A DNA stretch of 64,000 nt from Bugula neritina (lineage: Eukaryota > Animalia > Bryozoa). Position numbers and translations under genes: made by a program. Below are positions 11,328 to 58,918 of the stretch, in pieces. The stretch covers positions 16,475,875 to 16,539,874 of the forward strand of contig OZ037768.1 in assembly GCA_964035545.1 (NCBI GenBank). Direction: 5' to 3'. Position 1 is the stretch's first letter; each line of letters opens with the position of its first letter. The notes beneath the pieces were generated by a model that made no database searches, had not been told where the DNA came from, and saw nothing but the letters and a program-made list of their open reading frames with translations.

Positions 11328-14300
11328 CTAGAGATGAGTATCGGATTGAGTTGAGTGTGGTGAGGTAGTGGCACAGTTAGCAGGAGTGGACGAAGAATTG
11401 CATGTATTTCTAGTAGTTGAAGAGTGTGGAGAGGTAGTGGTGATGTTAGTAGATGTATCTGCACTCTCAGGAGACTTAGACAGAGACTTCTCTCGACTTG
11501 TCCTCTCTTTTCTTTGCTTCTCACTAAACAATAAGTAAAGCGCATTAAAGTAAAACACTACTCTGTGGTAGTTCAACTCATGTCACAGGTTATCTACATT
11601 CATACAAGAAAAAGTGGTTACAGGCACCAGGAAACTTCAAAATTATAAACCTGTACCAACTACTGACTGAAAGACTGTTAGATGAGGCTTAAGATCAAAG
11701 CACAACACTCGATAGAATGAGTGCAGAGCAAGTGCATAGGCAGCCAATGAATCGGCAGCAGATATATTTCTTGCAAAGAAGTTATACAGAAAGCTTCGTA
11801 ACTACATTAAGGTAGTGCTAAAACCGGCAGAAATATTTCGTTGTCAAAATGAATATAAAATTTTAAATATTTTTTGAACTGATTCCATTATTATTTGATT
11901 TATATTTACACATTTTGTAGACACGTGCATTAAACTATGTTACAATATTGGGGATCAGCTGGCAATGAATTTATTTCTAATTACAATAATTTTCATAATG
12001 CAAGCATATATCAAAATGCCAAATATATTGTAGATAGGGTTAGTGGTATCCTGTGTAGTGAGCTCTTAGTAAACCCACTATTCAACATTTCCTTTTGTAA
12101 AGTCGGCTTGATAGCACAGTTGATAGGCTCACTACCACTGCTAACTGCAAGAACTTAAATCTCACTATTGGCACGTATCATGTTAATATTTAGCAATATA
12201 AATTTTATGTTGAAAGCTATTTTAAGGATGTCAATTTGCTTTTTCAAACTTGAAAAATTTTGGTTGCAATTGTTTAAACTTGGTTTATTAGGAAAACTAG
12301 GTTATACTATGCCTGCATGCACGCAACTATTGTACTATCTTTCAAAGTTTATACAGACACCTGTTGAACTAAAAGGCCTTGATTAGTATTTCACTAAAGA
12401 ATAAAATAATTTAACATATTTTACAAGCTGACATGTAAATATTGATATCTGTAACTTTGGAATGTTTAAATATGGTATCAAACTATTATCAAAATACATT
12501 ACGTTTTTAGAAAGGAATGTTTGTGACAACACGCCCATCATACTTTATGTTCGAATGGAATATTAAACTGTATCGTCAATGAACTTAACATCTGTAACCC
12601 ATATAACAGGATGGAGTGGAAATAGGCAAGATAACGCTCAATGAGCCTCGCTGGAAACTTACAGCTCGCAACTATAAAGCTTGCTTGCTGAATGCTAGTC
12701 AACCACACAGTGCTTTTCTGCGCTAACCACAGACATATATTTTTGAAGCTAAGAGTATTTCTCTTTACAATCACATCTAAACTGTGCACAATGGTAAGAC
12801 AAATCCTTCTATCTCAGTTGTTTTTAAAAGTATAAACTACTTGTTTTCTCAGCTGAACATAACGTTGATATTCAAGTTTGAAGTACTACATTTTCAAATA
12901 AGAGAATTTATCACAAGCCTTACAAAACTTACAAACCAATTACAACTTTAAAACAATGCTGTTGTTAACAATCAAATTTTAGAGAGAAATGATTTTTGGC
13001 CATTGTGGAATTTATCACAAAGCAACATGAAGCGAGGTTAAAACACCCACACCTCCACCCCTTGGAACCTGTGTAGGAGTTTTGATAAAGATAAAACATA
13101 TTATATTATCATATTATTGCTTCCTTTTACATTCCTTTTACTCTAACACGACAACAATATAATTAGTGGAGTTTATCATATGAAAGCAAACAACCATTAA
13201 AGTGCTCCATTAGCATAAATGCAGTAAAACTGACGGAAGTTTATAGTCGCCATCCCTGTGAGAACCCCTGATGGAAAAGGTTGTTTAAAAGTGGGCTGAG
13301 GATATATTCCTCTATGTGGCACAGGAGCAATTATGACTGGATGCTCTTCCTAACATCACCCCTAAACCATAAGTGCAATAAACCATTCATAATTATTACC
13401 ACCAGTTGACCAAGTGGTGTATCACACTGAAACAATCAGATATTAGCACTAGTTATGAAATTCCTAGCAAACATGAGTGAAACAAGTACCTACTTGACAA
13501 ACTTAAGAGAACATTTAAAAAAAATTCTTAAATTTTCTACCAAAGACCATTTTTCATTTCACTGTATAAATAGATATAATAGTCAATTGCTGTTAGTGTG
13601 CGGAGTTCTGGTAGAACAGAGTAAATTTGCTAATTGTATTACCAATATTAGCAATAACTACAATCAATATTCACTTGATATATACATTTTGTTTGAATAT
13701 GTTACATTGTATTTTAAGCAAGACTAGGCTTAATCAAATTTTATTCAACTAGTTGATGGTGTTGAAGCCTGACATACATGTACATCAAATTGATTTGTTT
13801 TTGAATTTCATAGACATTTTAGGTAATGATTTCTTAATTACCTAATAGGCGGTCAATTGAAATGTATTGCAGCCGATTGGATTTTTGTATGACAAATTCT
13901 AAATCTAAGCTGTCTCTTTCTTTGAAAAATACTTGCCAACACATCACCGAGTTAACCAAAAGATTTTAAAAGTAAACAGATTTTGTAGCAAGTCTCAAAT
14001 TAAGTTGATACTTTAGAAAATTGTATGCATTTATTTTTAATGGTATATTCAAATGATAGCTGTAATAAAAAGTTATAGTAAAGAAACAACAGCATCAATA
14101 ATTTTCTAGAGAGCAGCTGTTAATGTGCAAAATTATTGCTTTGTTAACCCAAATCTATTTCTTTTAACTATGAGATACTGCAGTTAATTGTTAATACATT
14201 GCAAACAATTGAAGCATTACTTTTACTAACCTAGATGGCCTCTCATTGCTAATGCTACGATCATAACGGGAATGTCTGTACCGGCGATCATCTGACCTAA

Positions 14301-17300
14301 CATAAAAAGCATAACATAATTCAACAGCAAAAGATATGCATTGGAAAAATTTGAGGGAATTGAGAAAAAATCAAAATAATGATAAATTTGGGGCAGCAAT
14401 AAAGAATGACAATAATGAAGAATATTAACTTTTTTTCCAAAACTGACTTTACGTTTAGAATGAGAGAATAGTGTCAACTTAGCACCTCAGATAACATATC
14501 AATGAGCCATAATACGAAATTAGTTTTATGATTAGAAGTAGATAAACATAGTAATAACATGATCACTTTCATCTCCAATTATAGAATTTAAAGACTATAA
14601 GAGTAGAATTCAAGCCAATTAAAAGACAGATTTGAATATAAATATTAAATATATTAAAACTATGTCAAAATTATTCTGTAAAAATCATTCTAAGTTAGAG
14701 TTTCATGTTTTAAGCTTGAAAATGCATGTTAAAGTGATAAACCATAGATCTACATTGAACTAGCAGAAAATCTAACTATATAAGACATTTGTAGAAAGCT
14801 ATTGATAAAAAATATAATAAGATGAATCAATTTAAATTACCAATCACTTACCGAGGGCGCCTCTTGGGCGATCGTGATCTATAATAAAAAATAAAGTCAA
14901 ATGTCTTCAAAACATTTTCTGTTGAATAATTTACATCTATGAGGCACTTAGTGAAATAAGATTGCAAAACAATTAATTAAAACAATTAATGTATGACTTT
15001 CCAAACTAAACAAAATCATACAATTTTTTCAATCTATTTGTTTGAAAACTGGTAAAAATGAGTGCATACCTGGATTTAGCTGAATAGTCAGAAGAGTGGC
15101 CCTTACAGTTTCTCCGGGGAGATCTAGATCTACAACTACAATGAGAATAGTACTTGGACTGGCTGGCAAATCAAGAGGTAGTGATGAAGATTTCAATTCA
15201 AGTAACAAAACATTCATGAAATTCGAGTAGCTCATCAAGTTAGGAAATGAGAAGACAGTCTGCTATTTAAGCAATTGGAAACAAGTTTTCTCATTGGGTT
15301 ATGTCAAAGTACAAGAGATGGGCAACAGCATCACTTCATGAGAAGCCGAATTATTACCCAACACGAGTGTCATTCACCTCACTATTGGTAGATAAACAAG
15401 TGTAATCAGTAAAGCAATAGATGTTTGGTAGCCACACATCACTAAGAGAATCAGAAGTTTAGTTAAAGCAGCATAAGAATATGGCAGCAAAGTTTAGTCT
15501 ATTTGATGCATGAAAGTAGTTAGCTCATCAATTTATGTTTGGTATTAAAGAGTAGTACTCTAGGGTATTGATGTATAGGCTACATCATAGTTTGGTACTA
15601 TGGTACACCTATCAAACATAATAATTGCTATAAAATTAAAAGCAATTGTACAAAGATTAAAATATAATTTGCCATGCACACAGTAAAGAAATTGTTCACT
15701 GTTAAAACTAAATTTATAATACATTCTAAACTTATTCAGCATATGGCAATCAGTTTAGAAAATCTGAAACCTAGCCATACCACCATTTCATGTGCAACAG
15801 ATATTATTTCAATTAGAAAATTATTGTGCAGCAAAGACCAGCTGCCTACAGAGATATTTCCCTTGAGGTTGCTTCTCTATTTGAAAATGTAAAATAAAAC
15901 AGAGAAAAATGACATCAGCATACCTGTGCCTTGAACGTATTGAATCCTTTTGTTTTTCACTTCGATCATCAAATGGTCTAGCATATTCTACTCTCACCCT
16001 TCTTCCACAAAGCCTTCTATAAAAATACAATTGATTAAATGAAATTATATAACTGCAAATTTTATAATAAGCTTCATAAAATAAATTTAAATTTCAAACA
16101 CATTACCCCAGGGAAAAATAATAGTGAAACATGAAAATTAAAATTACCTCCCGTGGGATTTCCGTACTGCTCGTTCACATTCTTCAACACGTTTAAAAAC
16201 TATAAAAGCAAATCCAGGCGGATTTCTATAAGAAAAATACAACAAGAGAATATTGAACATCATTCAAAATTAATTCACTTATTGGTTGAAGATTGAAGAC
16301 TACAAGTCATAAAAACTAATTATTCATCCTCAACCTTACAACAACTGGTAGGTGACTTATATTCATGAGTCCAACTTTCCCTGGTTTAGCCAGAAAACCT
16401 TAAATTAGAAGGCTAAAACTTATTAGGAAATTCCTTACTTGAATATAAACTTTTCAATTAAAAATACAATGGAATTACAAATTATATAACCAGTATATAC
16501 AAATCACCAACGTTTAGTTAATACAGCAATTTATAAATTTGTGGTAATTATATACATTTTATCAGTATATTTATGGGCTACTAATAACTAGTTGTGGGTT
16601 GATATTGCCATAGCAATATCAACCCACAACTAGTTATTAGTAGCCCATAAATACACTGATAAAATGTATATAATTACCACAAAATTATAAATTGCTCTAT
16701 TAGAATCAGACTTACTGGTTGTGTTACAAGAGAACTTGACTTAAAAATTTGTGAATATATACACGCACACACAACCACACACACACACATATATATATAA
16801 AAGGTATTAATATCGGATAAATGAAATCACTCATTTAGCTGACTATAAATTTGTTTCGTATAATTTTACATTTCTGCTTACACGTACTGGAAAGTTTTTT
16901 ACTTTTGTTAAAGAAGGATAACTTTGGTGGCTTTAGGATACTGTACTTTTTATAGCTGCATAAGTTGCATAGGTTAGTTAAGTTCGAGTACGATTTACAT
17001 ATTCTTATAATGTCCCATCTGATGTTAAACTGCAAATTTTTTTCTTGCTCAGTTCAATATTTCTAGGTGTTCCTTTACAATCTATAAGTCTATCATCTCT
17101 TAGTTGCATTCTAGTGTGTATTCAGCTTTTCAATCACTGTGGTATAATGCTGATGAAAATAATTTAACTGTAGTCAGCAATAAAATATACACCCATTGCT
17201 ATGGACATCAACAATTTTTGCTTGCTTACTTCACAAATTTTCAAGTCATGTTTTCTTGTAACACAACCAGTAAGTCTGACTATTATAAAGTAATGGGCAG

Positions 17301-18391
17301 ATAGATCAATCACTTACAATCAGCAGCATAAATAATTCATACATTTAATTAACAAAACATGAAAAAATGAAACTCCAGTAAAAACCATCTGTTATTAATT
17401 ATGAGATTCAATTTCATATTGATGATCAACTTGATAAGTGCAATAGGTTTTATGATATTCTTATTGCTCTTGACTCACTGCTATTCTTTGTTGCTGTGAT
17501 TGCATGACCATTCACATTGTTATTGTGATACTCTATCAACCACCACAATGTAATTGCCATTCAGTTTAACTATTAGTATTAGTCATCTATAATTGTATCA
17601 TTTCTCTTATTATACTATTTATAATTAGTATTAGTTTTACTAAAAAGCACAATTAAACTCTAGTAGTAGCAGCAGCAGCAATAGTACTAGTAGCAACAGC
17701 AGCAGTATGAGTATACTAGTAACAGCAGTAGTAGTACTAGTAGTAGTAATACCAATAGTAAGAGTTACCAGTACTAGTAGTAGTAGTATTAGCATTACTA
17801 TTACTATTTGCATAAATTAAAATATAACTAGGTCTAGTAACTACTATTGCTACTACTGCTACCACTACTACTACCACTACCATTACCACTACTACTAGTA
17901 CTAGTATTACTATCAGTATCAATGTTAGACTAAAACTTAGACAAGATTTTTATAGTAAACCTAAATTTATAATTTTACTACCATTACTATTAGTAGTACT
18001 ATTAGTAATAGTAATACTGTATAAGTAGTAGCATTATGTATAGGTATAACTATTTTTCATATATGAAAATTAAAATAAAATAGAAATCTAAATGTAAAAG
18101 TAAAACTGAAAAATTATTACTATAAGTTATAGTGAGTATAAGTATATTTATACTTAGTCTTATAGTTATTCATAATGATAGTACTAAGTTTATTATTGAA
18201 ATTGATATTGGGCTACAGCATGAGTATAAGCACAACTAATAATTATAATAAATGTAATACCTGGCAACCCAAACGTCTATCAACTGTCCGTATCTTTCAT
18301 ACTCTCTTTCAATGTCATATCTTGTGGTCTGGTGCCCAAGATCTCCGACAAAAACTCTATAACCACCAAAATGCGGGTCATAAACTGCCAT
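11328..18391 (-). CDS. SRSF3/SRSF7/RBP1-like SR splicing factor (single RRM plus short RS region), ~218 aa
   Basis: Exons 18261-18391, 16148-16225, 15924-16016, 15070-15135, 14852-14878, 14231-14296, 11328-11523. Translation MAVYDPHFGGYRVFVGDLGHQTTRYDIEREYERYGQLIDVWVARNPPGFAFIVFKRVEECERAVRKSHGRRLCGRRVRVEYARP... has RNP2 VFVGDL and the family-typical WVARNPPGFAF RNP1 segment, followed by RSRSPRR/RSRSPKRR. No zinc knuckle seen. The start codon is uncertain: a short upstream exon near 18477-18483 could splice to CAG|TTTATGAC. Confidence 0.88.
13226..13367 (-). mobile_element. tRNA-derived SINE, internally deleted copy (same family as 34546 and 39604)
   Basis: Reverse complement contains ggtttagggg...tgatgttaggaagagcatccagtcataattgctcctgtgccac...catcaggggttctcacagggatggcgactataaactt, matching the other two copies. 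Degenerate flanking duplication cataaatgcagtaaaac / cataagtgcaataaac. Confidence 0.85.
16519..16702. repeat. Near-perfect 184-bp palindrome (90-bp arms, 4-nt centre) in intron 1 of the SR gene
   Basis: taatacagcaatttataaatttgtggt...gttgatattgc CATA gcaatatcaac...accacaaaattataaattgctctatta; about three mismatches. Confidence 0.95.
16706..17279 (-). mobile_element. Penelope-like element relic (C-terminal GIY-YIG endonuclease fragment) bounded by 50-bp inverted repeats
   Basis: ORF 16835-17035 (FNIRWDIIRICKSYSNLTNLCNLCSYKKYSIL...FNKSKKLSSTCKQK, preceded by IELSK) resembles the ELSK..I.W.I....Y....C.LC..EK..I...LNK..E....C.H pattern of PLE GIY-YIG C-termini. 16706-16755 and 17230-17279 are inverted copies (47/50 identical). 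Confidence 0.65.
17560..18250. repeat. Degenerate (TAG)n/(TAC)n low-complexity tract
   Basis: tagtagtagcagcagcagcaatagtactag... then actactactaccactac...; source of the poly-Val ORF 17737-17922. Confidence 0.85.
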
Positions 18392-18399
18392 AATGAAAA

Positions 18400-19318
18400 A
18401 TTTAGTTAATTATAGTTCAAAAAATATACATAAAAATTATTTTTAACCAACAAATACAATGCAAAAACCTACATTACGTATCATTCAGCTGTGCGTTCAG
18501 CAAAGCTCGACTTCACTCGATTTACGATTTTGTCCATTTTCAAAGAATCGTTATAATATAAGCAGTAATTTGAGATTCTCTAATTTGGCGTTAGGGGTGC
18601 AATTTGAAACCCCAAACTTTAAACTTGAGAGTTTTTAACTATTGCACCCAGTCACTATCAGCTTGGAGTTGCGTTTAAAAGGATTAACTTTTGGAGGTTA
18701 AAATTACTGAACCGAAACTATGTTCAATGGTCACCAATATGAACGTGTCTTGGAGTTGTTTACTCTTTCATCTTTTTACTAGTTGAGGAGAATAATTCGT
18801 CGGCAATCGTAATAATCATAGAAATAAATAATAATGCTATATAAATTTTTGGTTTGCAGTTTCAATTAAGTGCTGGTACTTATAATATATAGAACCATAA
18901 TTTTCAATTGCGTTATTAGAATCTTTTTTCGATTGCAATTATTCCTCATACCAATAGTGATAATGTGTTTTTTGTTCAAAATTGAAGCACGAAAATCATG
19001 TTGTTAGATTCTGTAGAAGATTGTAATTTATATACCTTCATAATCATTATTCATCATAATTAGACAATAGTTATTATGAGTCCGTTTAGCGTAGTTCTAT
19101 TGCAAATTGGAGTTGTGCATTTCAATGTTAAAGTAGACACGCCCAACGTAGTGTCAAAAGCCTCGCGTGAAAGGCGTGGCTTAGACACCATGATTAGCGA
19201 AAAGTCAATGAAATACCGTAAAAGCCATTCACGGAATACAACATGCGTTTAGAGCACGCGAATTATTCAAGACAATTGAAGGCAGAGGATTTTCTGAGTT
19301 TAGAGCCTACAGACGAAG
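18400..19318. promoter_or_regulatory. Putative bidirectional promoter between the SR gene (-) and the neuregulin (+)
   Basis: Divergent start codons are ~930 bp apart; locally CpG-richer stretches at 18490-18530 and 19135-19265. No TSS can be seen directly. Confidence 0.5.
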
Positions 19319-22300
19319 ATGTGGATCTCTCACCATAAGCTACTCCTATGGCACACCGCTAGAAATATCCTCGCGATATTTTACATGCTGGAAATACGAT
19401 TTATTTGCAGCTGCAGGACAGATTTTAATGACGTTCAGTCTAAAGCCGTTCTCTCTGATATAGTAATTGCTGGGAAAGTTGTAAATTTAAGTTTGACTCA
19501 GCCACCTCTATCAGCTGACTATGACAGTTACACTGCTTTTGTACAAGTTTCATCTGTGATAAAGCAACCAGCACATCAACTTAGTAACTATATTATTTAT
19601 AGGAGACAGTACATTTCTATAGATGGGTTTCTAAAGAACAACTCAGCTGATCTCCAGTCGTTGCATTTGTCGCAGGCAAACGCTAGCCATAATGTATCAA
19701 ATATATTTGCAAGTCAGTATTGTTTTTCCTACGTAAATCAATCACAGGATTATATTTTATTTATCAATCAAAGCATACCTGTCATCAATAATAAACCTAT
19801 ATATCGTTCTGCTCAAGTACCAGCTTTATATACAAGAACTGACAAAAAGCTAATAAAAGAAGTGCTATGTGCAAGTTGTGGTAAGTATTTTATAGAAATT
19901 TGTTTTAATCCTTATCCTAAGGTGGTATTGGATCACATAGAGTAATACTAAAATATTGCCATTAACCATTATTACATAACCTTAAGGCTTAAACTTAACG
20001 AAGCTAGGAATAGTTTCAGCTTGATAAGTCAGTTTAGATGTTTAGAGTTGAACTGATATTTTGCTGTTTAACTGCACTTCTAACATTCAGGTCTTGGAAC
20101 ACTAACTTATAGCTCAATAGTTCATTTGGTCAACTAGATTCAGCAGTTACACTTGGTGATAGTAAAGGTATTTCAATAGTTGATCCATTTACCTGTACAA
20201 TTAACAGTCGATGTAAATATCAAGCACTTAGATAAACTACAGCGCGAGTATGAAGAATAGTACCAATGAAGTGCTCACTTAAAAATAGAGTCATTAAAAC
20301 ACAAAGGTCAACTTTTTCATTTCAACGAAGTGCACTCGTACAGCTCCTTAGTGATGGCCAAATTATATGCTATTACTATTAGTATAATTACCAAGCTAGA
20401 GTTTTGATTTATTTTATACTATTTTGTTAACATTATCATTTTTCAGTAATATTGTATAATAATTTATCTATAAATATAACTAATTAGGCACTGATGATAG
20501 CCTAATGCCTACAAATTAGCTATTGCTTTTCTTATACTCTTAGGCTAAATATTTTTTCAGTGAAGTTACTTTCAATAATTTTTTAATTGTGTTATCATTA
20601 ATAATGACATACACATTTCATACAAAGTGGAAAGTGAAACTCACATAGAGTTGACAAAGGATAAATTATCCAGATTAGGCATTATCAAAGAAAACTGTAA
20701 AACTGAAAACCAGACATACATGTGTCATCAACTACTGCTTTATATGATGATGTTTAGCAGCTTATCACCAACAGCATACACCTACACCTACACCCATTCC
20801 TGCCCATAGTTTCATCACCGTGTCTCTCTGTGAAGCTGTTAGCAACAGTATGACATAAAATGTATAGCATATTCAGTTATAAAATTTTAGCTAAAAGTCC
20901 TAATGCCAAATCAAAACGTAATCTCGAAGTAATGGAAGGTGAAAGTAATTATAAGATAGCTTGCCGAATAGAAGGTGTCCCCCACCCTCAAGTATATTGG
21001 TATAAAGATGGCGTAGTACTGGATGATTCTCACCGAGGCATTGCCATAAAACAAAGAAGGTTAGTTTATGAAATAAATATATCTAAAACTATATTATTAG
21101 ATATGACTATTTTAAAGTAAATTTAGCCGGGTTTTAAATAATTGATGTGTAACAATTGTGTGCATTGTTCAACTGTTTGCGTGCAAGAGTTGCATGAATA
21201 ACTACATTGCCAAATGCTACAGAATGTTGCAATTGCTAGTGTATAGTAATTCATTGATCTACAGTTAGTTGTCTATAGGAAATATTTAAAGTATTTTTTG
21301 GTCGATAAATAATGATTATTTTCTAGACGTGGCTGTTGCAAAAACAAATAAAATTATAATAAGGTGCTATTACCTTACATTATTCCTTACAAGTTTATGC
21401 ATGATTAGCCGGCAGGTATCTATGAAATAACTTTATACCATTGACACTTTTTCTTAACATTTTCAATATTATTTGTTTTAGTTGAGTCATGTAAATATTT
21501 TTAACACTTGTGTGCTTGTTTAAGGGGTATTTGTTTTTCATGATGAAATACTTGAATGCCTCTCTTGACTACTATACCTTATAACTGTGGCCAGTACACA
21601 GTTTGCATACATTTGCATAATGTTTTTAGTTGCTATGGTTAAATTGTCAAGTTTGGGCAAGCCTTAACAGATTACAAAAGAAGAAGAGTTATTATGTAAA
21701 CATCATGCCAACTGACAATGATTCTTATGTAATTTTGCAGGAAAAAAAATATAATAACGAGTACAATAAGAATAAAGTCTGTGAATGATCAGCACGCTGG
21801 TGTTTATAAATGTGTAGCTAAGAGCATCCTGGGGGAAGATACTGCCAAAACAAAGTTAACAGGTGAGTTTTGAAAGAGATTCTGGTGTTCAAATAACCAT
21901 TTAGTTACCCAACGTAGGTGGTTCATAGTGTCTACATATGCACTATAAATTGGAGTTTAAGCTGAAATACAATACTGCCAACAATATTAATATTGCTTAA
22001 AGGTTGGCTTGCTGTTAATCAGACAAACATCTCACCCTACTTGAACTAATTCGTGGCTTGTGTGTTTGTCTATCAGCAGGAAAATAACAACATCTACTTA
22101 CCAATCCTTTATTAGTTAGCAGATGGCAAGCTTTTCAAACTGAATTATTCTTTAAGTGATCAATTAGTAAACTACATTAAATGGATACAGCACCGCTGGG
22201 GTTCACTAAATTGAGTCCTAAACTCTAGTGAAAATCCCAGCATTATGCACTTCAGATTTGTTTATCTCCAGATGTGACTGCAGTCTATCTTTAGGACAGT

Positions 22301-25300
22301 CAAGACAGTCAATTCTAGCAGTCAATACTGTATTATTTTTTCTCATATATTAAGTTGGATGGTCAGTAGTTGATGGCATTGAAACCACAGACATGCTATG
22401 ACATGTAAAAAAGCAAGATTATAGTTAAAAAGTAAAGATGTTGAAACCCTGACTATAGCAGAAAATGGCATCTAGTGGACAGAATGCATAGTTTCTGGCG
22501 TACAATATGATTCATTGAGGTTGGCCGACACATGCACCCCTAGATTAGTCAATTTTCTATCTCCAAAAGTGTCAGCTGTTAGAAACTAAAAATATAGAGA
22601 TTTTTTGTGGAAATTTTTTTTCAAGTGCAATCTTAAAAGCAACTTGTTAGTGGAGTAATTTAGTAATTTTGCAATTATCAACATTGTAATATAATGCTAA
22701 TTATAAATTATTTGCTTTTTACAATTAGATTTTATGATTACTATTGCATATGTTTTGCACGCGGGTATGATGTTTACACATATTACAGTAATAATATAAT
22801 TGTATTATAACTTAAAGAATATAACCATCAAACGTGCCAAGTGTCACACGTCACGTTTATTTGCCTGCGTCCAGGATTTTTAAAAGAAGTCTAGAGATTT
22901 GTTAAAATCATGATTTCTCAAAAGATAATTAGTCCCTGAATCTCCAGGGTGTAGAGGTGTCCTAGAAATTTTACATTAAATGCTTAGCTAAGTCTATATT
23001 TTCAAATTTGTCTAGAAAAATACAGAACAATGACTGGGATTGATTATTGCAGTAAGACATAGGTTATTATCATTCAGCCATTAAATTTGTCTTCACTGGC
23101 TTGATAAATTCCTCTTCTTCGGCGCAACACCCTTTCTCTGTGATGCTAGTTTACTACTTCACAAAAGCAAATCAGTTTAAAGAAGCTTGCCATCCGCAGA
23201 AAGTTACCTTTTTAAAATAAATTTGCCAGTATACACTGCCAGTAGGGCTAGTAATGGCATGTATAGCAAGCTTTTACTAGCAGCCCTTCGCTGACTGTGC
23301 TATGCCGTGGACCTAACCAACCACATTATCTTGTATACTCAACCATTCAGTTATCTGACTGAGGTTTCCTGCTGCATGCAGTAGAGCTAGCAGCACAGTT
23401 ATATTGCCAGTGTAGATAGCCTTGTGTAGCATTACTATGCCCTTCCATCACCACTTCACACTTTTATAACTATAATGGATGTATACCTGCTAGTTAGCAA
23501 AAGTTAGCAAAAGTTAGCAATAATATAATAACTCAGCAGTATGTAATTACTATTTCCATAATATACTTCATAGTTTCTGTTAGGAAGTAGTAAAAGGTCC
23601 ATCAATTATAAAAGTGCAATAGATTTTATCTGCTAAGCATTTCTATCAACAGTTTGTGTCATTTATTATACCATCTTCTTAAAAAAACTTGTTTTATTTC
23701 TGTTGCAGTCGTATCGAAAGGTATGTATGCTGACATGGTAACTTTGCTCTCTGTCTTTCCGTTTCACATTCAATGTTTGCATGTCAGCATTGTGTAGCTA
23801 GGAAGTTTGCCTAATGAATGATTAAGCAAGGGGGATGACTTTAGATTAATAGATGCTATATACTTATTTAGCCTTGAGTTTGTTTGCTTTTTCTATTATT
23901 TCCATTCTAACCACCTTCTATATGCAAATGAATCATCAGACAAACAAACATGATTTTATAGAATATGCTAGCAGCTAACAACACTTACTATAAAGTCTGA
24001 TGACTCAGGTGCAGTTTACAACTGAATGGTGCAACAAACAGATACATTGACCGGTTTTAAGTTAAAACTTGCCACATATTTGCACATATCATTATTGTTA
24101 TTATTATTAACCATGGGTTAATGACGGCTACGCATTTAGCTCTCTAGCTACTATTTGTGGTATGTGACGAATGCTCATTTGAGTTTTCCTAATCTATGGT
24201 ATGAATCCATCGGAACATCTCACCCCCACACAATTTATCTAACACCTTTATCATTCATCAACCAATAACTTTGTAACTTCTGGTGCTTAGGGGTGTAAAT
24301 TCTGAATTGCTGGGCCACTTCAGAAGGTACTTGTGGGTAGCTACATTCCTTCGGCCATATCTTAAATTCCATTTCCTCTTATCAGCTTGGCATTAAAATT
24401 TTTGAGCTTTGAGCATCTACAGACTTTCCATGTTAACCATCAGTTTACAATTATTGTAGGCTTTTAGATAAAAAATAACACTTTGTTTGTTGATAAGAGC
24501 AGCATGAAAGGCATTTGACATGTTTTTTTAATATACACTGTAGTGTGTATGTTTAGACAACCATATATATTTATACTAATATTCTCTTGCAGCATAGAAT
24601 AGCTAGAGGTTAATGGTATAGGAGTAGCCAATAGTTAGTTAATAGACATTGGTTTCATTGCCGAAGATTCTCAATGTCATGTGTTTGACTTTCTTTAGAG
24701 GCGGAAGGTACACCACCCCCTCCTGGCAACTCCAACATTTGGTCAGCGGTGGACATAGATGATGTCGACAGCCAGGATAGCATAGGGACAGTGTCTCATT
24801 ACATTCCATGCACTGGCCGAGACAGAAATTACTGTTTACATGGCGGAGAGTGCCAGGTATTCCCCGATGGCCGCTACAAGCATTGTCGGTAAGTTTAGTC
24901 TCAAATTTTACACTTTGTTAAGCTTGCAAAAAACTTGCAACTTTAATAATGGCATAACAACTACATTTTACCTGTGGTCATGCTCTCAGCCGATGTTTCA
25001 GGTGTCCATCAGGGTTCACAGGAGAAAGGTGCATGGAGCGAAGTGTCATCAACACCGGCGGAAGTATGTCAATGGCATGTCTCCCCTTCACCAGCATGCA
25101 TTGACATTTTCTGTCAAACATATTGTATACTTGCATGTTGTGTGCTCATTGCATGTTTGAGCTACCTCCTTATATGAACTACAGCTTTCTGTTAGTCCAC
25201 ATTAGCAGAAATTGAAACTGTACCTCATCAGCTTATTATTTCAGATACTTTGTTTTGCCAACAGCAAAAAATGAAGTCTCTACCGCATCAGAGTCATTAT

Positions 25301-28300
25301 TAGCTGCCCTGTGAAAAATTCTCCCTCAGCTTATATTCTTTATAATATTAACCTCCAGTTAACCTTGCATGCCATGTAATATTGCACAATAGACTTGTAT
25401 GCTCTATATATACCACTAAGCATATGTTTTATAACACCTTCTGTTGTATTTTTACAATCTTTCATGAATTCAAGTTTGTATTGTATTATCTCATGCGAAT
25501 TGTGCTTTTTAGCTGCTTGGCAAGATTTACGGGCGCTCGTTGTGAAGAAGCAAATATTTTTCCGCCAACGCCCTTCCCCGTCTTACAGTCGACTAACAGG
25601 CTACCAGGTAAAAGATTTTAGTAATGATTTGTTATTTACAACTCAGGATAGATATTGTTAAGATGCTATGAGTGCTGTACAGTTGACAGTTTCATGGTTT
25701 TTTTGTTTGTTTTCTGTGTTATGAGCTTGGCCACTATTTAACCACTATCTTTCAGCTGTTTATAACTAGGAATTTTGACTACATTAAGTTACTAGCCACT
25801 GCCATTTTCTTATACATATCAGAACTCTTGGATATCTAAGTTAGATTGATAGTATCTGTTACAATTATTCAACCACTATATGCTTCTTAGGCCAACTAGT
25901 CAACATTAAAAAAAACATGGTTTGATTTTCCTCAGATAGGCTGGCGTAGGTAAAATACTCAATAATATCACCTGTACCTGCATCCACATCATTGTAATCA
26001 AACCAACCCGTTAATGACCGAATTACTAACTTATGAACTCCTTATTGACATTTAAGTGGGTTTATTCTATAATAGTACCAGGCGCTGCCCAAAGTGTAAC
26101 AAAAAGCTTTTTTTCTAAACAAAAGCATATATTCAAGCTGTGGTTAGATTAGCAATTTTGAAGAGAAATTTAATTGAGAACTTTATAATGTGGATCAAAT
26201 AAGTTTATCTTAAATTATTTACACGCCTTTAAATAATCAAATATATGCCATAATAATATTATTTTAAATATAATTTCAAAATTTGAGATGATATATAACT
26301 TTTCCATTTCAATTAATTCTTTTTTAGAGCTCACACAAAAAAACTGTTCTTATTTTTGTGAAAAGTACATGAAGTTTAGCAGCAGCCTTTACATATATTT
26401 AAACATAAATTAATAAAATGGATTTATATCTTCAGGTGTTAAAATCTCAGCTTTTATAATATTTAAGTAAATATTTTCACTAATTTTCAAGGATATTTCA
26501 ATCAATAAGAAGCAACTGCTGAGTTATTGAAGTAGTCCTTGTTTTTATAGATTTTTGATTTATTCTAATTTGGCTAATACCACAATTTGCACTGCATATA
26601 TTCTCCTGCAGGTATAGCTATAGTTTATAAAGAAATACAATTACTTTTTTCAAGGGTTGTCAGCTGAAAAACGTAATACTGGGGACAAAAATAAAACCTT
26701 TGTCATATACGCACATTATTTTATTATAAATTAGCCTTAGGTCACTGGATCTTGAACATTAAGAGACAAGTAATAATTGCCTAAGTTAAGAGTTCCTCAT
26801 GCTATAGTAATTACTATACAGCAAGAGTGCTGGTTATTGACTCAATTGAGCATATAACAATTTATTACCTGGTAGAAATGCTATTGCATGTGTTTATGTA
26901 TGTTAACTGTGTGTAAAATTATGTCTATTGTAAACTACAATATGCACATAATACTTTGGTGATGCCCATAATTGTAAAGATCTATGACCTGGTATTGTGG
27001 AAAAATATCTTTATTATCGCTAGTGTTGTGTGTAATAGCCAAACAGCATAACTTTGTGATAGATAATTTATATAATCAATTTTCTAGTGAATAATGTAAT
27101 GGAATAGTAAGTAGACATTGAGCCTAAGGTGTCAGCTACCTTGCTAGTATTAAGGTGATTAGATTACCAGGAAGAAAGACACTTGCACTATGCTCTTGGT
27201 AGATTCACAGCTTGGATGCAATTTTTTGTTGGTTCCATCTTAAATTTGTGTGCAAAAAATATAATTTACGTGAGCCTGCAGCCAGGAAAGATAAAATCAA
27301 AGCTGCTGCCAGACAATACTATTATATTGATTGCTTTAATTTATCTGATCAAGGGTTTAAAAGGAGCATCTGGCATTGTAGAGTAATATTTACTCTTTAC
27401 AAGCATATGACTATGACTGAGTGTTATGTGCTGATGTAAGCAGAGCATATGTTGATTGTATATATAACACAACATTATCAGCTCCCAGGCATCTAAATAG
27501 AGTGGTTTTACTATAAGAAAGTGGATGTGTGAAGCTAATGAAGTTCCAAAGAAAGTCAGTTGCAGAGTGTAAACTCTGACTATAACAGATTTTACTGACT
27601 CCTTAATTTAATTGAATAAGTTTAGTGGATTATCATCTGCTGACGTTTATTTACAGTACTGGTAAACAAATGCTAGCACTTACATAATACCTAATATGTG
27701 CTAATATTTCAATACTACTTGACTTGACAATAGATTCATGCTACTTTTTTGCAGGAACAAGCTTGGAGCTAGTATACATAATCATCACATTAGCAGCAGT
27801 TCTTCTAATTCTGGTCATTTTGCTGTTGGTAGTGGCATTTTACTGTGGAGGAAAGAGCTTTCAGAGGTATATTTAAAAACATTCCAACTGTACAAGTTTG
27901 CATAATAATTAATAATTTTAAGTGGCAACTAGTTAGTACACCGTAGTTAGTACTAATTGCAGAAGCAATGGCCTGAGCAAGTGCTCTGATAGATGCATAT
28001 TGGCGGTGGTTAGTACAAGGATAATTATTAAGCTATTAACCTTTAAAGAATGATGCTGTACTCATTTGCAACAGCAGAACATTTCTAGCACTTCTAGAAA
28101 ATATACTACTAATGAAGGGCTTACTGCAGCTTCCCTAAATAGTCCAACATAATCAGAATAGGGAAATAAAGCTATTTTTAAGATAGGGAATCCATTATAA
28201 AGATGTTTAGTCTATGATTTATCCATTGTTGGCATATACAAAGCAGTCACTTACCAGCAATAGCCTATACCTGGTTTCCAGTTAACCTGTTCAGTACGGT

Positions 28301-30694
28301 TGGTTGCAACTGCATAGGAAATAAATAGTTGCATCAGCATGCTTAATGCACAATTGTTTTAAAAAACTTGTTTCAGGCAGAAAGAGAAAAGGCAAGGTCA
28401 TGTCCAATACTGCCCGACTCCTCAGGTTGAAGCCATTCGTCTGTTACCAAGTCAAGATTCTGAACACAAGAGTCCATCTAATAAGCTATGCAGCTCAACG
28501 GTCAGTTTTATAAAACAACTAAATATTATTTATTTCAAATCGGTTCTAGTTTATCCAAAGTTTTTTCTAATTTTTAGAAGATTTTAGGTATAGTCTAGTC
28601 AGGTTAGAGTTATGAGCAAGTGTTTGAAGACCTCAGTGAGCTAATTGATTGAGTCACAGGAAGTAAAAATAGCATTTCCTGTGTTTCTCTTATCAAAGAA
28701 GTACTTGGCTGTTATCTGGTGAGCCTAGCAGGGTGTGAATGAAGCTCGCTGTGTGCGATGGCTCCAATATTCTATTCAAGGCAGCGTTATCTAGGCTGTT
28801 GAGTTTAACGTAACTCTCTTTTTTTCTCACTTTTGCACCCACTTATCTCGCTAGTTCTCATTGCCTGTGATATGAGGTCAGACTTGGAGTTTGGCCTGCT
28901 AAAAATATAACTAAGTGTCTGAGGTTAACTCAAGTATTGCGTAAGGTTTAAAGTACTACTTTTTTAAAAATGAGATAAACTTATTATCAAGCTACTTTGT
29001 CAAGTTTTTCATAGTATTTAACTTTCAAGTTGACAAAAATCACAAAATTTAACTTGTACAGGAAAGTTATAGTGAGAACAAACCAGGCAAGTTAATATAA
29101 CCCTAAAACTGAGCAAATTGATTTATAACCAGACTAATCATAGCCAGATTTATCTCTAGGTGCACTAATTATTTCTGACTTTCTGTACAGATAGGTATTA
29201 TCCTATAAAATATGGTCCATTATGCTAAGAATAATGAAATGTTTATTTGCTTGGCTATGGAAGTGGATCATTTCTTGACTGGAGAATTGTATTCACGCTT
29301 ATAAGGCAAATCATTCTCATCTGGATTAGCTTAAAAGATAATTACTTGACTCATTTTTGTTTCCCCCATAAAAATTTCGACCTGAAAAGTGACAGATGGA
29401 ATCTGCTTTAAATAATCTGATTCAAGTTTTTTTGTCGTCTGCTTGCGTCTGCTGGTATTAGAAGACCGAAACAACCAACATCTGAAGGCTTAGTTACAAA
29501 ATGCCATATTGCAAAACTTTATTACACTAGATTGATGCAATGAAATGGTCAGCTGGTTTAAGTTAGAAATGCACTCTAGTAGCCTCTGTTACAGTTTAAA
29601 TGAGGTTATATGTCTAAACAAAGTTTATGTTAAGTTCTAGGCACCTGACATGTTTATTCCATTTTCAAATTAGTGTGAAATGTGCTGTAAAATTTATGGT
29701 ATAGTAGATCCTGAAACAAAGAGAAAGATACAAAACTGAGGCTTATTGGGTAACCAAAACACAAATATTCAATTGGGCTTTCTATTCATAATAAGCAAAC
29801 GAAATCTAAAAATAGATACAATAGTAGTGTTGAGGAATCAGTTTGGCCCCTGGAGTGGTATCTTGCTAAAAAACGACAGTTTTTGCACCTATTCTCTCTT
29901 TAAATTTGCATGTGAATTATCCCACATCCCAGAATACAAAGCGGTTCATTGTATACTCTAAAGGCAGACACTACAATCAACTTTTTACTGGGTAGTCAAG
30001 TCACATGGTAGTAATTAGTGGGTAGTCTAAGGAGAGAAAAATTTATTGCATTCCTGGTGAGAACTCATAAAATATGCTTTGCTACAACATGGTCTATTTA
30101 CATAGTCTTATGCATTTATAGTATATTTATGAGAAACTGATGTATTTTAGCTGTAGTAGGTCTGTTGTTGAATGTATCCTTGTGTGTTAATAGGCTTCAC
30201 AGACTGAACCAATGAAGAAGAGCCCTAACCTTCTTCAGAGATCTCTAAACCTGGAGCACCACTTTCCTCACTCTTCTTCTGACGTTATATTGAGACGGAA
30301 GTCACTGAATGGCTCCCCGGGTAGACCAGTGAGTCAACCAGCGGACAGACGTACCCCTAGACACCGTCTCAGCGCCACCTCAACTATCACCGAACAAAGA
30401 GTAAACGATAGCAAAGACCATATATCATTATCAACACCAACTGAACCACATTTAGAAGAACATGTAGGCTTATGTGATGGTAGAATACATCATCAAGCTC
30501 ACTGTGATCATGAAAGTACTGAGTCCATTCGTCTTCATATTTCAGAGTCTTCAAGTGACAGTGAAGACTCTAATAGAATAAATAATAATAAACTGCAGGA
30601 TCTTTATTCTAAGCCAGCCAAGTACATGGAATTAAAGGCTACTAATAAGGGGAAGGCAAGCAGACAACATTTACATAATGGAAACCTAGAATAA
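19319..30694 (+). CDS. Transmembrane neuregulin/vein-family EGFR ligand (NRG2-type N-terminal domain, Ig, EGF, TM, cytoplasmic tail), ~617-628 aa
   Basis: Exons 19319-19880, 20891-21059, 21741-21862, 23709-23720, 24699-24888, [25002-25063 or 25513-25607], 27755-27866, 28377-28500, 30194-30694, all phase-consistent. DVQSKAVLSDIVIAGKV resembles the NRG2/GGF2 N-terminus. Ig: IACRIEGVPHPQVYWYKDG...HAGVYKCVAKSILGED. EGF: SHYIPCTGRDRNYCLHGGECQVFPDGRYKHCRC..FTG.RC. TM: LVYIIITLAAVLLILVILLLVVAFYC, followed by a basic QRQKEKR. Confidence 0.9.
25002..25063 (+). CDS. Neuregulin alternative EGF C-terminal exon A (CPSGFTGERCMERSVINTGG)
   Basis: tttcag|G TGT CCA TCA GGG TTC ACA GGA GAA AGG TGC ... GGC GGA A|gtatgt; phase 2 in, phase 1 out; supplies EGF Cys5 and Cys6. 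Confidence 0.85.
25513..25607 (+). CDS. Neuregulin alternative EGF C-terminal exon B (CLARFTGARCEEANIFPPTPFPVLQSTNRLP)
   Basis: tttttag|C TGC TTG GCA AGA TTT ACG GGC GCT CGT TGT ... CTA CCA G|gtaaaa; phase 2 in, phase 1 out; supplies EGF Cys5 and Cys6. Confidence 0.85.
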
Positions 30695-32705: not shown

Positions 32706-34411
32706 CCTCTTCCTCCTCTTCTTTAGCACGTACTAGAACAGCGTAAGCAGTACGCCTCAATAATTTCAATCCTTAACCAGCGTGTTTTTCAAATCTGTTG
32801 TCTTGCGGCTATTTTGCATAGTGGTATTATAAGTTAGAAATCATCACCGTGGCCCTAGCTTAGTTTTGATGTCACGAATTGTCTTTGGTAAAAACTGTTA
32901 TACTTATAGTACATTCGTTTCTTAGCATGTAATTATATCGTGAGAAGATCTCCCCAAGACACTGCTCTAGTGATTGCAGTGTTAGTGGGTCTATCATTTA
33001 TAAGTTCATCGTAAGCAGATGTGAGCGATTCATGTTTTTCCTCATGGGACAGAAAGCGAAGCAACAGAACATGTTTTATTTTTTGTTCGTCTATCACCTA
33101 GGGTTTCTAGTTTCAGCTTCTCACGAGCTACTGGCACACTATTTCTTCTTTTAATGGTTGATATGAATCTTATGGCGTTGTTTTGCACCATATCAATGTT
33201 ATTTATTAGATAATCTAATGAAGTATCCCAAACCATATTCAACATGCGGTCTACATAGGCTTGTGTAAGCAAGGAGACAAGCGGAAGCAAGGGCATCATG
33301 CAGTGCGCATTTAATCATGCTCCCAACTGTCTTTTGGCTTTCCCAATTTCAACTCTGAATATGTTTGTTAAACTTCAAGTCTGGCTGAAGAATGACACTC
33401 TGGTAGCAAGTCTCCTGCAAAATTTCTAGGGTTGTCCTGTTTAGCACATGGTTGGTGTAAGGGGAAGTTGCAGTCTGATTGAAGGGAAGAACGGAACATA
33501 TTTTCCCATTATTGAAGTGCGTAAACATTGTTTTGAAATCTCGATTTGTCTTGAGCATTGTTGACCACCTGGTAGATGAGGGTGTCCCCGGCAAATAGAC
33601 TTATGTTACAATCAATGTGGTCAGGCAGATCATTGATGTAGGCTAGGAAGAAGGTAGGGCCTAGCGCTGACCCCTGAGGAACCCAACCCCAGACTTTACA
33701 GGCAGTTCATATGAAAGTTGCCCTTTAATCCTTAAGTTTTTGTGTGCGGGCCATAAGGAAGTCATGAATCTATTTCACTATCTGTGTACTCACATTAGGA
33801 ATGTTAGATAGTTTTTGCATTAGGAGTCTGTGTGAAACTTTGTCGAATGCCTTCCCGAATTCAGGAACTATTGCATGAACAGCATCACTTTTGTTTCCAT
33901 GCCTAGCAATGTCATGATATGTGCCATATTATTGTGTCTCACATGACAGCCATGCTGTCTGTTACACAGAAACTTATCTGGTACAAAGTTTAGGTGGTGG
34001 AGCGCTATGTGTTTGAGCAACTTGCAAAGAATGCTAGTAATCGTAATAGATGGGTAGTTATTTGGTTAATCAGCAGGTCCTTTCTATGAAGCTAGCTTCC
34101 ATTCACTGGGAAAAGTTAAGGTAGATAGAGAGACTTTAAATTTAAAAGAAAGTCACTTAGCAGTCATGATAGGGTCTATTACAAGATCCTCTTTGCGTAT
34201 ACCATCTGGACCTGCTGGTTTTCTATTCTTGAGAGCAGTGAGAATGTTAGCAACTCCAGCATCAGATACCTCAATAGATGAGGCAGTACAATTATATCTA
34301 TTGTTGCTATCAAGTTGTGTTGCTTGCAGAATAGTATTGAAGAACTTATTCAAAATATTAGCACATTCTATTGGGTCTTCAGTGTGGTCATTTCCCGAGT
34401 CTTGAGTTTCA
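32706..34411 (-). mobile_element. 5'-truncated, frameshifted non-LTR retrotransposon (CR1/L2-like RT)
   Basis: Minus-strand RT motifs KPAGPDGI (~34200), YPSITITSILCKLL (~34030), FGKAFDKVSH (~33850), VPQGSALGPTFFLAYINDLP (~33650) and VQNNAIRFI (~33170). 3' tail AAAGAAGAGGAGGAAGAGG at 32706-32724. Candidate TSD TAGTATTACTAT at 32694-32705 and 34412-34423. Confidence 0.88.
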
Positions 34412-34758: not shown

Positions 34759-36057
34759 TTTACAATTAGTAAATTACTCAATTATTGCCATGATATTAAG
34801 TTTATTACTCAGTTATGAGATTGTTCAGATTTAATTTACATAAGATTTTTATTTAGTCAGTTTGTTCCAGCATCGTGGATAAGCAAGATGTCTTCTGCAG
34901 TCAAAGACAATTACTTCCTGTTATACATGAAATGTAATCTACAACAATTACTATAAAATATACGTATGACTTAAACTACAGTATGTCTTGGCACTTTTAA
35001 GCTTAGTTCAAATCTCTGTCAAGTGGAAGAGAAACAATCAAAAAGTTCCTGTAGCTGATTTGTCAATTTTGAATAAGTAGCAGCATTAACTGCATAAACT
35101 TTTTTGTTTTGCATAAAACATTGATGGTTAATACTGATAATTACTAAGTCTAATACTCGTAGTAATAGAGCTAGTTATACTTATAGTAAATACAGTATGA
35201 GTATTAGTAATACTTGTACTGTAAGTGTATTGCTATTAGCATAAGTGTTGTTCAATAATTACTTATTTACTAAACTAATACTTATACTTATACTATTGGT
35301 ATTACTGTTAGTATTACTATTGAGACTGTCTTATTTAGTGTTACTGTAGTAGTACTACTGATAATATTGCTATGTCTATAAGTATATATTCAAAATATTA
35401 TTAGTACCTATAATACTCTATGCTTCTGGAAATATATGGCTATCACTAGCTCAACATCCAATACGTGTGATGATTTTTTAAATAGCTAGTTCTGGTAAAT
35501 CCAAAGCTCTCCCAATAACAGCAGCCATTAAAAATGAAATTTTGCTTTTATAGATATCCACAAGTATGCTAATGAATAGCTTTGAAAAAATTAAATACTC
35601 ATGAATTTTTATGTGCCTAAATTTTGTGAGTGTATAAAAAGAGCTGAAATGTTAAATAGTAAATTGTACATGGCTCAGCTTTTCAACTCTGTAATCATGG
35701 GCCTATTTGCATGAAGGTTGTTGAAAGTTTGGAGAAAAAACCATATATTGAACAATGTAGACCTGGATTAAATATACAAGGAATTTTTATTTCATTAAAA
35801 CTAGACAATTAGCTTTTAATAATATAGAAAGTGCTGTCACTCCAAATAAATTATTTTGTTATATAATTTAATTAATATTTTGATGCTATTTGTTTAGCAG
35901 CTAGCTTTTCGTTCACTGGTATGAGCTTCAAAACGAACAGGAACGCAATTTTATACTGTTCTGTAAATTACTAGGCATGGTTATTTTTAAAATTCTAGTT
36001 TTTTACAGAAATAGTATTGCATGGATTAAATTTTTATTTTGTAGAGTTTTGTTAATT

Positions 36058-55537
<19,480 letters not shown>

Positions 55538-56810: not shown

Positions 56811-58918
56811 TGTATGTGTTAGGAAACCAAAATACAAATATATTCAATGACAAGAATATTCCATAACTCTAGTCTAGCACAGAACTTGCATACTACAAAT
56901 CTATGAGCAAAAACCTTATATTCTGTTAGAAAATCTTTGCAACAATATAACTTTCAACTATGCTAAAACTTGTTGAAAGAAACAGTTTCAGATTTATATA
57001 CTTTAAAGTAGCATGAAAAATTGATGTGAAATATGATCAACTCCTAGTCTATGACCACCAGCCCAGTTGTGGGATATCTTTGGACTCAATGCCCCCCCCT
57101 TCCTTCTTCATGACTAAATTAAATTCTGATTTCTGATGCACCGATTTCAAATGTGCAGCCTAAGAAATAAAACTCGTGTCTACTTAAAATTGATCTTTGT
57201 TTAAATTTATCCTTTCATAATTTTTTTTTTAATGTACTGCTACTACCCAAATACATATTGCTATATTGCAATTAAAATAAACAGCAATAATTTAATGCAG
57301 ATATAATATATAGCAAAACTTTTAGGACAACCAAATTACACTCTTGTGAGAAACTATGATTTTGTGGCAGTGGCTCAACCAGTGCTAAAGGTTTCAGAAA
57401 GCTGATTTTAGTGGGTTTAGAACTAATCCAATTTTTTGCTATACATCTTAGACATACACAGTAAATGAAACTTCAATTTAAAAGTTGCTGTTTGTGCTGC
57501 AGGACAGTCTTTGCCCACTATAGAGCCCTAGTTGACTAGAGTCCTAGAAACTGACTATAGTTTCTGTAGAATCTGTCTAGTCAATAAAAAGAATACATCT
57601 TCACGTTATTATTGATGTTGCTATCTACATAGCTAGAAACTATACACTGCAAATGATAAGCTGGAACAATGCCAGGGCACTCCTAAATCAGGGGCAGCGC
57701 TACTACATTGTTTTATATTTGTATAGATTCTGTATTTGTATAGAGGGTGGTTGAAGAAACTTTAGTAGCTAGTTTTGCTTGCATTGCGTTTGCTCCTTAA
57801 CAGTAGCTATTGTCTGCTTAAGGGCAATGGTCTTGAGGCTAAGAATGCATACTACAATAGTAATTATTGACTTGGAACATAAGCTGATACCTATGTTTCT
57901 GTTGCGAGTATAACGGTCACGTGATCAATAAATCCACGCAACCGAGTTCAGGTAGCAGCACACAGCACGTTGACTATATCCATATAGCATGTGCTCTGTT
58001 TTCACCCATCTGTAGCAGAGTAACATGTATTGGTGGCTTACGCGCTCATGAATATCTGTACTACTACAATACTACTGCTTTATCAAGGTGGGAATTACTT
58101 ATCACTTTATACTTCTTTTAGCGCAGTAGTAATCTATAATTAATTAGGTCTTTGTTGTATCTTTCAGCAACACTATGTTCCCAGTTAAAAACCCGTTGCA
58201 GAAGTTGTTCGGTTGATAATTTCATATCATTATGTTAATTTTCTTTGAATTCGGCTAAAATATTAGCTATGGAAAACCAGAAAGGAGTGTTACGTTTCTA
58301 GTGTAATTATTTTTCATTAATCGACTAGCTTTATTCTGTACATGTTTAGTAAATTTGTTGCATATAATCCAGGATGTTTAGCTAAACATGTATGTATGAT
58401 GTATTATTATAGTGCACCAATTGCAATTTTTATGATAAAACATAATGTTTATTAATTAATTAGTTACCCTTGACACGTTATCGGCATATATATGTAAATT
58501 TGAATTTTTTATCTTATTCACATGGAGTAAGTTTGATTCAAAAGTGTAAATACATTATTGCAGATTTAGTTTGACTTTACTTGAGCTACTAATCAATCAA
58601 CAATTCTTTCCTACAACTATTGATGAGTTGTAGGAAAGAATTCTTAAATGTACTCTCTCTGCTAAAATCATTTAGTCAATCATGTAGTTCATATTTTCAA
58701 TTCAGGACAAATCTATTATATTATTACTACATTTTAAACCAAGCAGGCACGCAGCACTATCAAACATCTGCCTGCTACTCATTGTCTCATACAATGCAAT
58801 ATGAAACCACCGTTTCAAGAGACCAATGCTATTGCAATCTTTTTGTAATATTATTCAAAATATGTGCTACTCTTTCCATGTGTGTTAATGCTATATAAGT
58901 TACTGCAGGTTTGACAGG

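Follow-up and report, generated by a model that had tools for sequence, protein, structure and literature searches.

A 64,000-nucleotide (nt) stretch of Bugula neritina DNA (contig OZ037768.1 of assembly GCA_964035545.1; hereafter the window) contains a gene that we assign to the neuregulin/vein family of EGFR ligands, and this gene carries two tandem alternative exons, A and B, each of which supplies the last two cysteines (Cys5 and Cys6) of its single EGF module. As judged from the sequence and from transcripts of related species, the exon pair is real, is conserved among bryozoans and would function like the alpha/beta switch of vertebrate NRG1 and NRG2; it widens the evolutionary range of a known mechanism and is not a new kind of system.

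The exon pair in the window

A preliminary description of this DNA had placed the EGF exon, exons A and B and the transmembrane (TM) exon at coordinates that prove exact for all four, each with AG/GT ends, and had stated that A and B share identical phases, as indeed they do: both enter in phase 2, leave in phase 1 and have lengths of 2 mod 3. It had also proposed that either exon completes the EGF domain and joins the TM exon in frame. Our frame check confirms that A or B alone keeps the frame, and the full spliced model is open for 617 residues with exon A and 628 residues with exon B. Inclusion of both exons together, or of neither, produces a frameshift, and with both the reading frame stops at positions 27770-27772 within the TM exon, after 409 residues. 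The predicted difference between the two stalks was likewise recovered, since 15 residues separate Cys6 from the membrane helix when A is used and 26 when B is used. On its + strand the window has no Cys5-x8-Cys6 motif other than those of A and B, and a profile of each exon retrieves only its own site at a significant E-value in the 216-Mb genome. Neither exon extends more than 720 nt beyond the shared EGF exon, the intron between them measures 400-525 nt across loci, and the two tandem Cys5-Cys6 exons occupy a place equivalent to that of the vertebrate alpha/beta switch, where the preliminary description had put them. Read-through from exon A into the adjoining intron (25064-25104) gives a short tail and a stop in the window and in two of the loci introduced below (L002 and L003), so that intron retention would likewise yield a membrane-less form.

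Conservation of both exons among bryozoans

Exon A followed by exon B, in matching order and frame, is found in the window, in Watersipora subatra (L002) and in two other divergent loci (L003 and L006), and a sister species locus (L010, 92% identity) also carries A then B. Across the bryozoan loci the length of A ranges from 59 to 62 nt (62, 62, 59 and 62 nt in the four divergent loci) and that of B from 86 to 98 nt, and is always 2 mod 3; because this order and these lengths recur in Watersipora and the two other divergent loci, the pair is not a product of chance. Introns do not align between the divergent loci. Over 13 codons compared among divergent species, exon A has pN values of 0.07-0.19 and pS values of 0.68-1.38, that is, synonymous sites near saturation with low replacement rates, and exon B has pN values of 0.07-0.35 and pS values of 0.28-0.66. 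These substitution patterns indicate that A and B are both under purifying selection and both kept alive. Within the first 11 codons of exon B the third position is invariant in 6/11, compared to 13/108 elsewhere (Fisher p 0.002), a pattern that would suit selection on a second reading frame as well as a splicing element, between which the data do not distinguish. A metagenome scan returned only loci like those already in the comparison, and the contigs belonging to one further protein were too short to reach the EGF exons. At two of the loci we also observed irregular donors: exon A at L003:16454-16512 has an apparent GC donor, and Watersipora exon A (L002:14085-14146) contains a strong internal donor at 46 nt, the use of which would shift the frame.

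Transcript forms in related species

The RefSeq model of the Watersipora gene, the single annotated model, joins the EGF exon to B and B to the TM exon. A second form is represented by the Membranipora membranacea NRG sequence in the supplement of Barberan et al. 2016 (PMC4914847; transcriptome SRX1121923), which continues from Cys4 through a 20-residue A-type exon into a frameshifted-B tail and ends a few codons into the TM exon, as predicted for A+B in all four loci (the comparison was made by eye on machine-read PDF text). On this comparison, splicing uses both A and B, and the pair is not strictly mutually exclusive. The Membranipora sequence is an ortholog with near-identical N-terminus, Ig and EGF exons; it is the one sequence listed, and alternative exons are unmentioned in the parts of the paper that we examined.

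A GCATG cluster downstream of exon A

The first 150 nt after exon A contain 3-4 GCATG motifs per bryozoan locus, compared to 0.14-0.30 expected (Poisson p 6e-5 to 2e-3); the motif is absent from the intron preceding A in every bryozoan locus. Rbfox proteins bind GCATG, and their binding downstream of an exon promotes its inclusion, mostly in nerve and muscle. The motif suggests Rbfox-type control of exon A, probably with a tissue bias.

Alpha/beta assignment and the residue after Cys6

The preliminary description had called A beta-like and B alpha-like, in reversed order relative to NRG1. This proposal did not survive closer comparison, and the exons are unassignable to alpha or beta because 12 residues, half of them fixed by the fold, are too few. 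Exon A of the window scores 13.4 bits against NRG1 beta and 12.3 bits against alpha; exon B of the window alone gives no neuregulin match, and the B profile gives weak matches to TGF-alpha and NRG1 alpha, not beta. We considered and rejected an alpha-like A, as a four-species A profile strongly prefers alpha but loses this signal without L003.

Every A seen, that of Membranipora included, has Met directly after Cys6, where B has Glu or Gly. Since Lys45 of alpha lies three residues after Cys6, this position is the equivalent of NRG2 residue 43, and in the beta form of NRG2, a full agonist, substitution of Gln43 by Leu leaves only partial agonism (PMC7773179, PMC11060329). By transfer from human ErbB4, A is predicted to be a weaker or more selective ligand, an analogy that is suggestive. 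Three EGFR-like loci, recognised by domain IV, were found at C4:24.26 Mb, C5:9.99 Mb and C2:25.17 Mb, so that a choice of receptor between ligand forms is possible; Membranipora also has three EGFRs. The loci on C5 and C2 are very similar in domain IV, which suggests a recent duplication.

A comparable exon pair in Mytilus

Bryozoans are not alone in having such an exon pair; that of mussels can already be found in public annotations. Pro-neuregulin-like isoforms of three Mytilus species (for example, XP_063444198.1 / XP_063444199.1 and CAG2234550.1 / CAG2234551.1) differ exactly in the Cys5-Cys6 segment and the stalk, and the M. edulis locus (L016) has two tandem exons of 77 and 68 nt, with phases as in the bryozoan pair, both of which are annotated as joining the TM exon directly. 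The Mytilus pair thus resembles the bryozoan pair in its tandem alternative Cys5-Cys6 exons and in having GCATG after the first, but differs from it in that both exons have Glu after Cys6 and Leu five residues after Cys6, in introns of 1.5-5.8 kb and in a second exon whose shifted frame closes early. The pairwise score of the two Mytilus exons is 60, compared to 18-45 when either is set against bryozoan exons, and their scores against NRG1 beta/alpha are 32.6/26.4 and 30.4/21.4 bits. In an exon tree of 18 codons, built from bryozoan and Mytilus rows without vertebrate or Membranipora rows, they group together with ultrafast bootstrap (UFBoot) values of 86 (protein) and 94 (DNA). Some Mytilus isoforms contain an extra 18-residue exon (L016:38591-38644) that adds two more cysteines between Cys4 and Cys5 and would disturb the EGF fold.

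A proposed mechanism and its alternatives

The explanation that best accounts for the observations as a whole, and which we hold with moderate confidence, is that the Cys5-Cys6 exon was duplicated in tandem in a bryozoan ancestor, independently of the vertebrate and Mytilus pairs, and that both copies are used through regulated alternative splicing. EGF-B-TM would give a membrane precursor with a long Pro/Thr-rich stalk, matching the Watersipora model; EGF-A-B would give a membrane-less ligand with an A-type loop and a frameshifted tail, matching the Membranipora transcript; and EGF-A-TM, as the frame predicts, would give a short-stalk membrane precursor. An Rbfox-type protein acting on the GCATG cluster may promote inclusion of A, probably in nerve or muscle, the two loops may have unequal potency or efficacy or may favour different ones of the three EGFR-like receptors, and stalks of 15 and 26 residues may lead to different shedding. 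The bryozoan pair would then work like the alpha/beta exons of vertebrate NRG1/NRG2 and like the Mytilus pair, most likely with an origin of its own.

Several observations weigh against this account. EGF-A-TM, in frame in all species, is not among the forms seen in relatives (the Watersipora model and the Membranipora transcript). From the A+B stop, 94 nt remain to the next junction and more introns follow, a placement which implies that the A+B product may be decayed and not translated. Rbfox binding at this site is read from the motif, and an Rbfox gene was not found in the genome with the C-terminal model PF12414, a result that does not show absence. The efficacy argument is borrowed from human ErbB4. 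M. edulis has two GCATG after the first exon and none after the second (p about 0.006, one locus), which hints at common ancestry, and positional orthology with Mytilus survives approximately unbiased (AU) tests on the 18 codons (p 0.11 and 0.37). Reversed orthology with Mytilus is not rejected either.

A tentative alternative, which fits either origin, is that A does not belong to an exclusive pair but is a cassette before a constitutive B and acts mainly as a membrane-to-secreted switch or as a poison exon that lowers output. It is consistent with the facts that the sole A-containing bryozoan transcript seen also has B and that the single Watersipora model uses B, and with the excess synonymous conservation in B, the shifted frame of which stays open in each of the four loci as far as a matching point of the TM exon (under synonymous recoding, and with the loci taken as independent, the joint probability of this is about 0.03); an A-B intron of 400-525 nt would, moreover, give no steric block to double inclusion. 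However, the 2 mod 3 length of A, through which A reads in frame into the TM exon, is kept in every species although a mere cassette could do without it, both Mytilus exons are annotated direct to the TM exon, and a role purely as poison exon leaves the conserved cysteines and low pN in A unexplained.

With respect to ancestry, the comparisons above make independent origins of the pairs fairly likely. The opposing proposal, possible but considerably less likely in our view, is that a pair was present in the protostome-deuterostome (or at least the lophotrochozoan) ancestor, that the vertebrate, bryozoan and mussel pairs descend from it and that the similarity within each gene reflects homogenisation or co-adaptation to each lineage's receptor. 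A tandem pair stands at an equivalent place in three lineages and occurs in 2/2 invertebrate phyla whose loci were readable, GCATG is found only or mainly after the first exon in both invertebrate lineages, double inclusion with a frameshifted second exon is seen in human NRG1 (PMC11360300) and in Membranipora, and the AU tests leave positional orthology standing; all of these argue for common descent, whereas the shared phases say nothing on ancestry because any duplicate of the exon must keep them. Common descent is harder to reconcile with the grouping of the Mytilus exons with each other, with their both scoring higher to NRG1 beta than to alpha and with the fact that neither A nor B shows a consistent alpha or beta signature. 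Convergence is, furthermore, usual for such events: of the human-fly coincidences among tandem duplicated exons, 7/42 share ancestry (PMC9741552). Taken by itself, a lophotrochozoan or older origin of the pair has some plausibility, well short of probable, and a protostome-deuterostome origin is unlikely. Doubtful, too, is the fuller proposal that the alpha/beta switch predates the protostome-deuterostome split, such that vertebrates, bryozoans and bivalves share one pair, an Rbfox-driven first exon and a frameshifted double-inclusion secreted form; if it were true, ligand tuning by splicing would have preceded the four-ErbB system.

That one exon is a dead duplicate or the sequence vertebrate contamination, the two possibilities that the preliminary description had raised against itself, is very improbable: transcript support does come from relatives only, but both exons are conserved in those relatives, keeping their splice sites and a low pN between loci that have introns without mutual alignment, and the DNA is bryozoan, its closest relatives being bryozoan and both flanking genes syntenic with Watersipora.

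Relation to known systems

The bryozoan gene resembles vertebrate NRG1 and NRG2 in its Ig-EGF-TM layout and in the two tandem alternative exons after the Cys4/Cys5 intron, and differs from them in that each bryozoan exon carries most of its own stalk and that the Pfam neuregulin cytoplasmic domain is not detected. In vertebrate NRG1/NRG2 the alpha/beta isoforms set affinity and full versus partial agonism: alpha and beta forms differ 10- to 100-fold in affinity (PMC13466763), and NRG2 alpha is a partial agonist (PMC11060329). The human NRG1 isoforms alpha-beta3 and alpha-beta2a carry alpha followed by a frameshifted beta, one being membrane-less and another a decay candidate (PMC11360300). More generally, tandem duplicated exon substitutions comprise homologous alternative exons that are often tissue-specific and often convergent in orthologous genes (PMC9741552); NRG1 and NRG2 are unnamed in the text of that study and in those of its supplements that we examined. 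A literature search covering open papers, with subscription papers mostly outside its coverage, returned no paper describing an invertebrate neuregulin with alternative EGF exons.

The retention of an exon duplicate in two invertebrate phyla means either that the switch is ancient or that a receptor-contact loop has been duplicated repeatedly, and either origin bears on the evolution of EGFR ligand diversity. The bryozoan case is compact, with the exons close to the EGF exon, a conserved candidate regulatory element and three candidate receptors.

Gene identity and architecture

The preliminary description had named the gene an invertebrate neuregulin, and the domain layout and the presence of a bryozoan ortholog bear this out. 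One Ig I-set domain precedes a single EGF module in the window (Pfam; window motif scan), followed by the TM segment. An intron between EGF Cys4 and Cys5, together with an EGF module adjoining the membrane helix, is the rule for ErbB ligands (PMC1618406), and both are present in the window gene. A search with coding exon 1, the product of which is 49% identical to XP_067933510.1, identified that protein as the full-length ortholog in Watersipora subatra. The nearest atlas clusters of this ortholog are NRG2 and vein (both 0.92), its EGF domain has NRG1 beta and alpha as best matches among solved structures (NRG1 EGF, E 4e-7), and a profile search retrieves Mytilus pro-neuregulin (E 8e-10). No Pfam match to the cytoplasmic neuregulin domain PF02158 was obtained on the window cytoplasmic exons or the Watersipora protein, an absence that is usual outside deuterostomes. 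By these features the gene is the bryozoan neuregulin/vein, with an Ig-EGF-transmembrane product that is predicted to be an EGFR ligand. Its coding exons and the motif cluster are listed in Table 1.

Table 1. Features of the neuregulin/vein gene in the window
Feature	Positions	Strand	Basis
Coding exon 1, N-terminal leader and NRG2/vein-type N-terminal domain	19319..19880	+	562 nt; AG/GT and frame check
Ig I-set domain, first exon	20891..21059	+	Pfam I-set, E 4e-7
Ig I-set domain, second exon	21741..21862	+	Pfam I-set, E 6e-6
Probable 12-nt micro-exon between Ig and EGF exons	23709..23720	+	predicted from splice sites and frame only
Spacer and EGF Cys1-Cys4 exon, 190 nt	24699..24888	+	ends in phase 2 at the ErbB-ligand intron position
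Alternative exon A, 62 nt: Cys5-x8-Cys6, short stalk	25002..25063	+	splice sites; conservation; Membranipora transcript
Four GCATG (Rbfox-type) motifs directly downstream of exon A	25075..25155	+	position conserved in relatives
Alternative exon B, 95 nt: Cys5-x8-Cys6 and Pro/Thr-rich stalk	25513..25607	+	splice sites; conservation; Watersipora model
Transmembrane (TM) exon, 112 nt	27755..27866	+	AG/GT ends, frame check
First cytoplasmic exon	28377..28500	+	predicted from splice sites and frame
Last coding exon, cytoplasmic tail	30194..30694	+	tblastx match to Watersipora locus L002; frame check

The micro-exon may be a second regulated exon. A TGCATG lies about 60 nt downstream of it, and an 18-nt candidate followed by TGCATG was observed at L003:14447.

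The neighbours of the Watersipora locus match those of the window: upstream, in head-to-head orientation, an RRM gene, and on the downstream side an AAA gene of RFC type; because the ortholog and both flanking genes are syntenic in Watersipora, the window is bryozoan. In the window the RRM (SR-protein-like) gene occupies about 14000-18400 on the - strand, head to head with the neuregulin gene, and a CHTF18-like AAA gene lies downstream at about 36000-55500 on the + strand.

Homolog searches with two further protein queries (one of them residues 170-420) retrieved no other neuregulin. A candidate second ligand at C3:3.95 Mb was rejected, the match being to a many-EGF protein; the region C3:3950000-3968000 contains a gene whose tandem EGF repeats number in the dozens and which has an open frame of >2000 codons.

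Elsewhere in the window, an intron of the RRM gene holds, by eye, a long near-perfect inverted repeat at about 16520-16700, possibly a foldback element, and a tandem array of an 18-nt unit at 1340-2650, with long open frames on both strands, lies among the exons of a - strand gene. Judged by translation only, fragments at 33045-34400 on the - strand resemble a reverse-transcriptase retroelement, and a 343-codon open frame at 58889-59917 resembles a PTB-domain protein.

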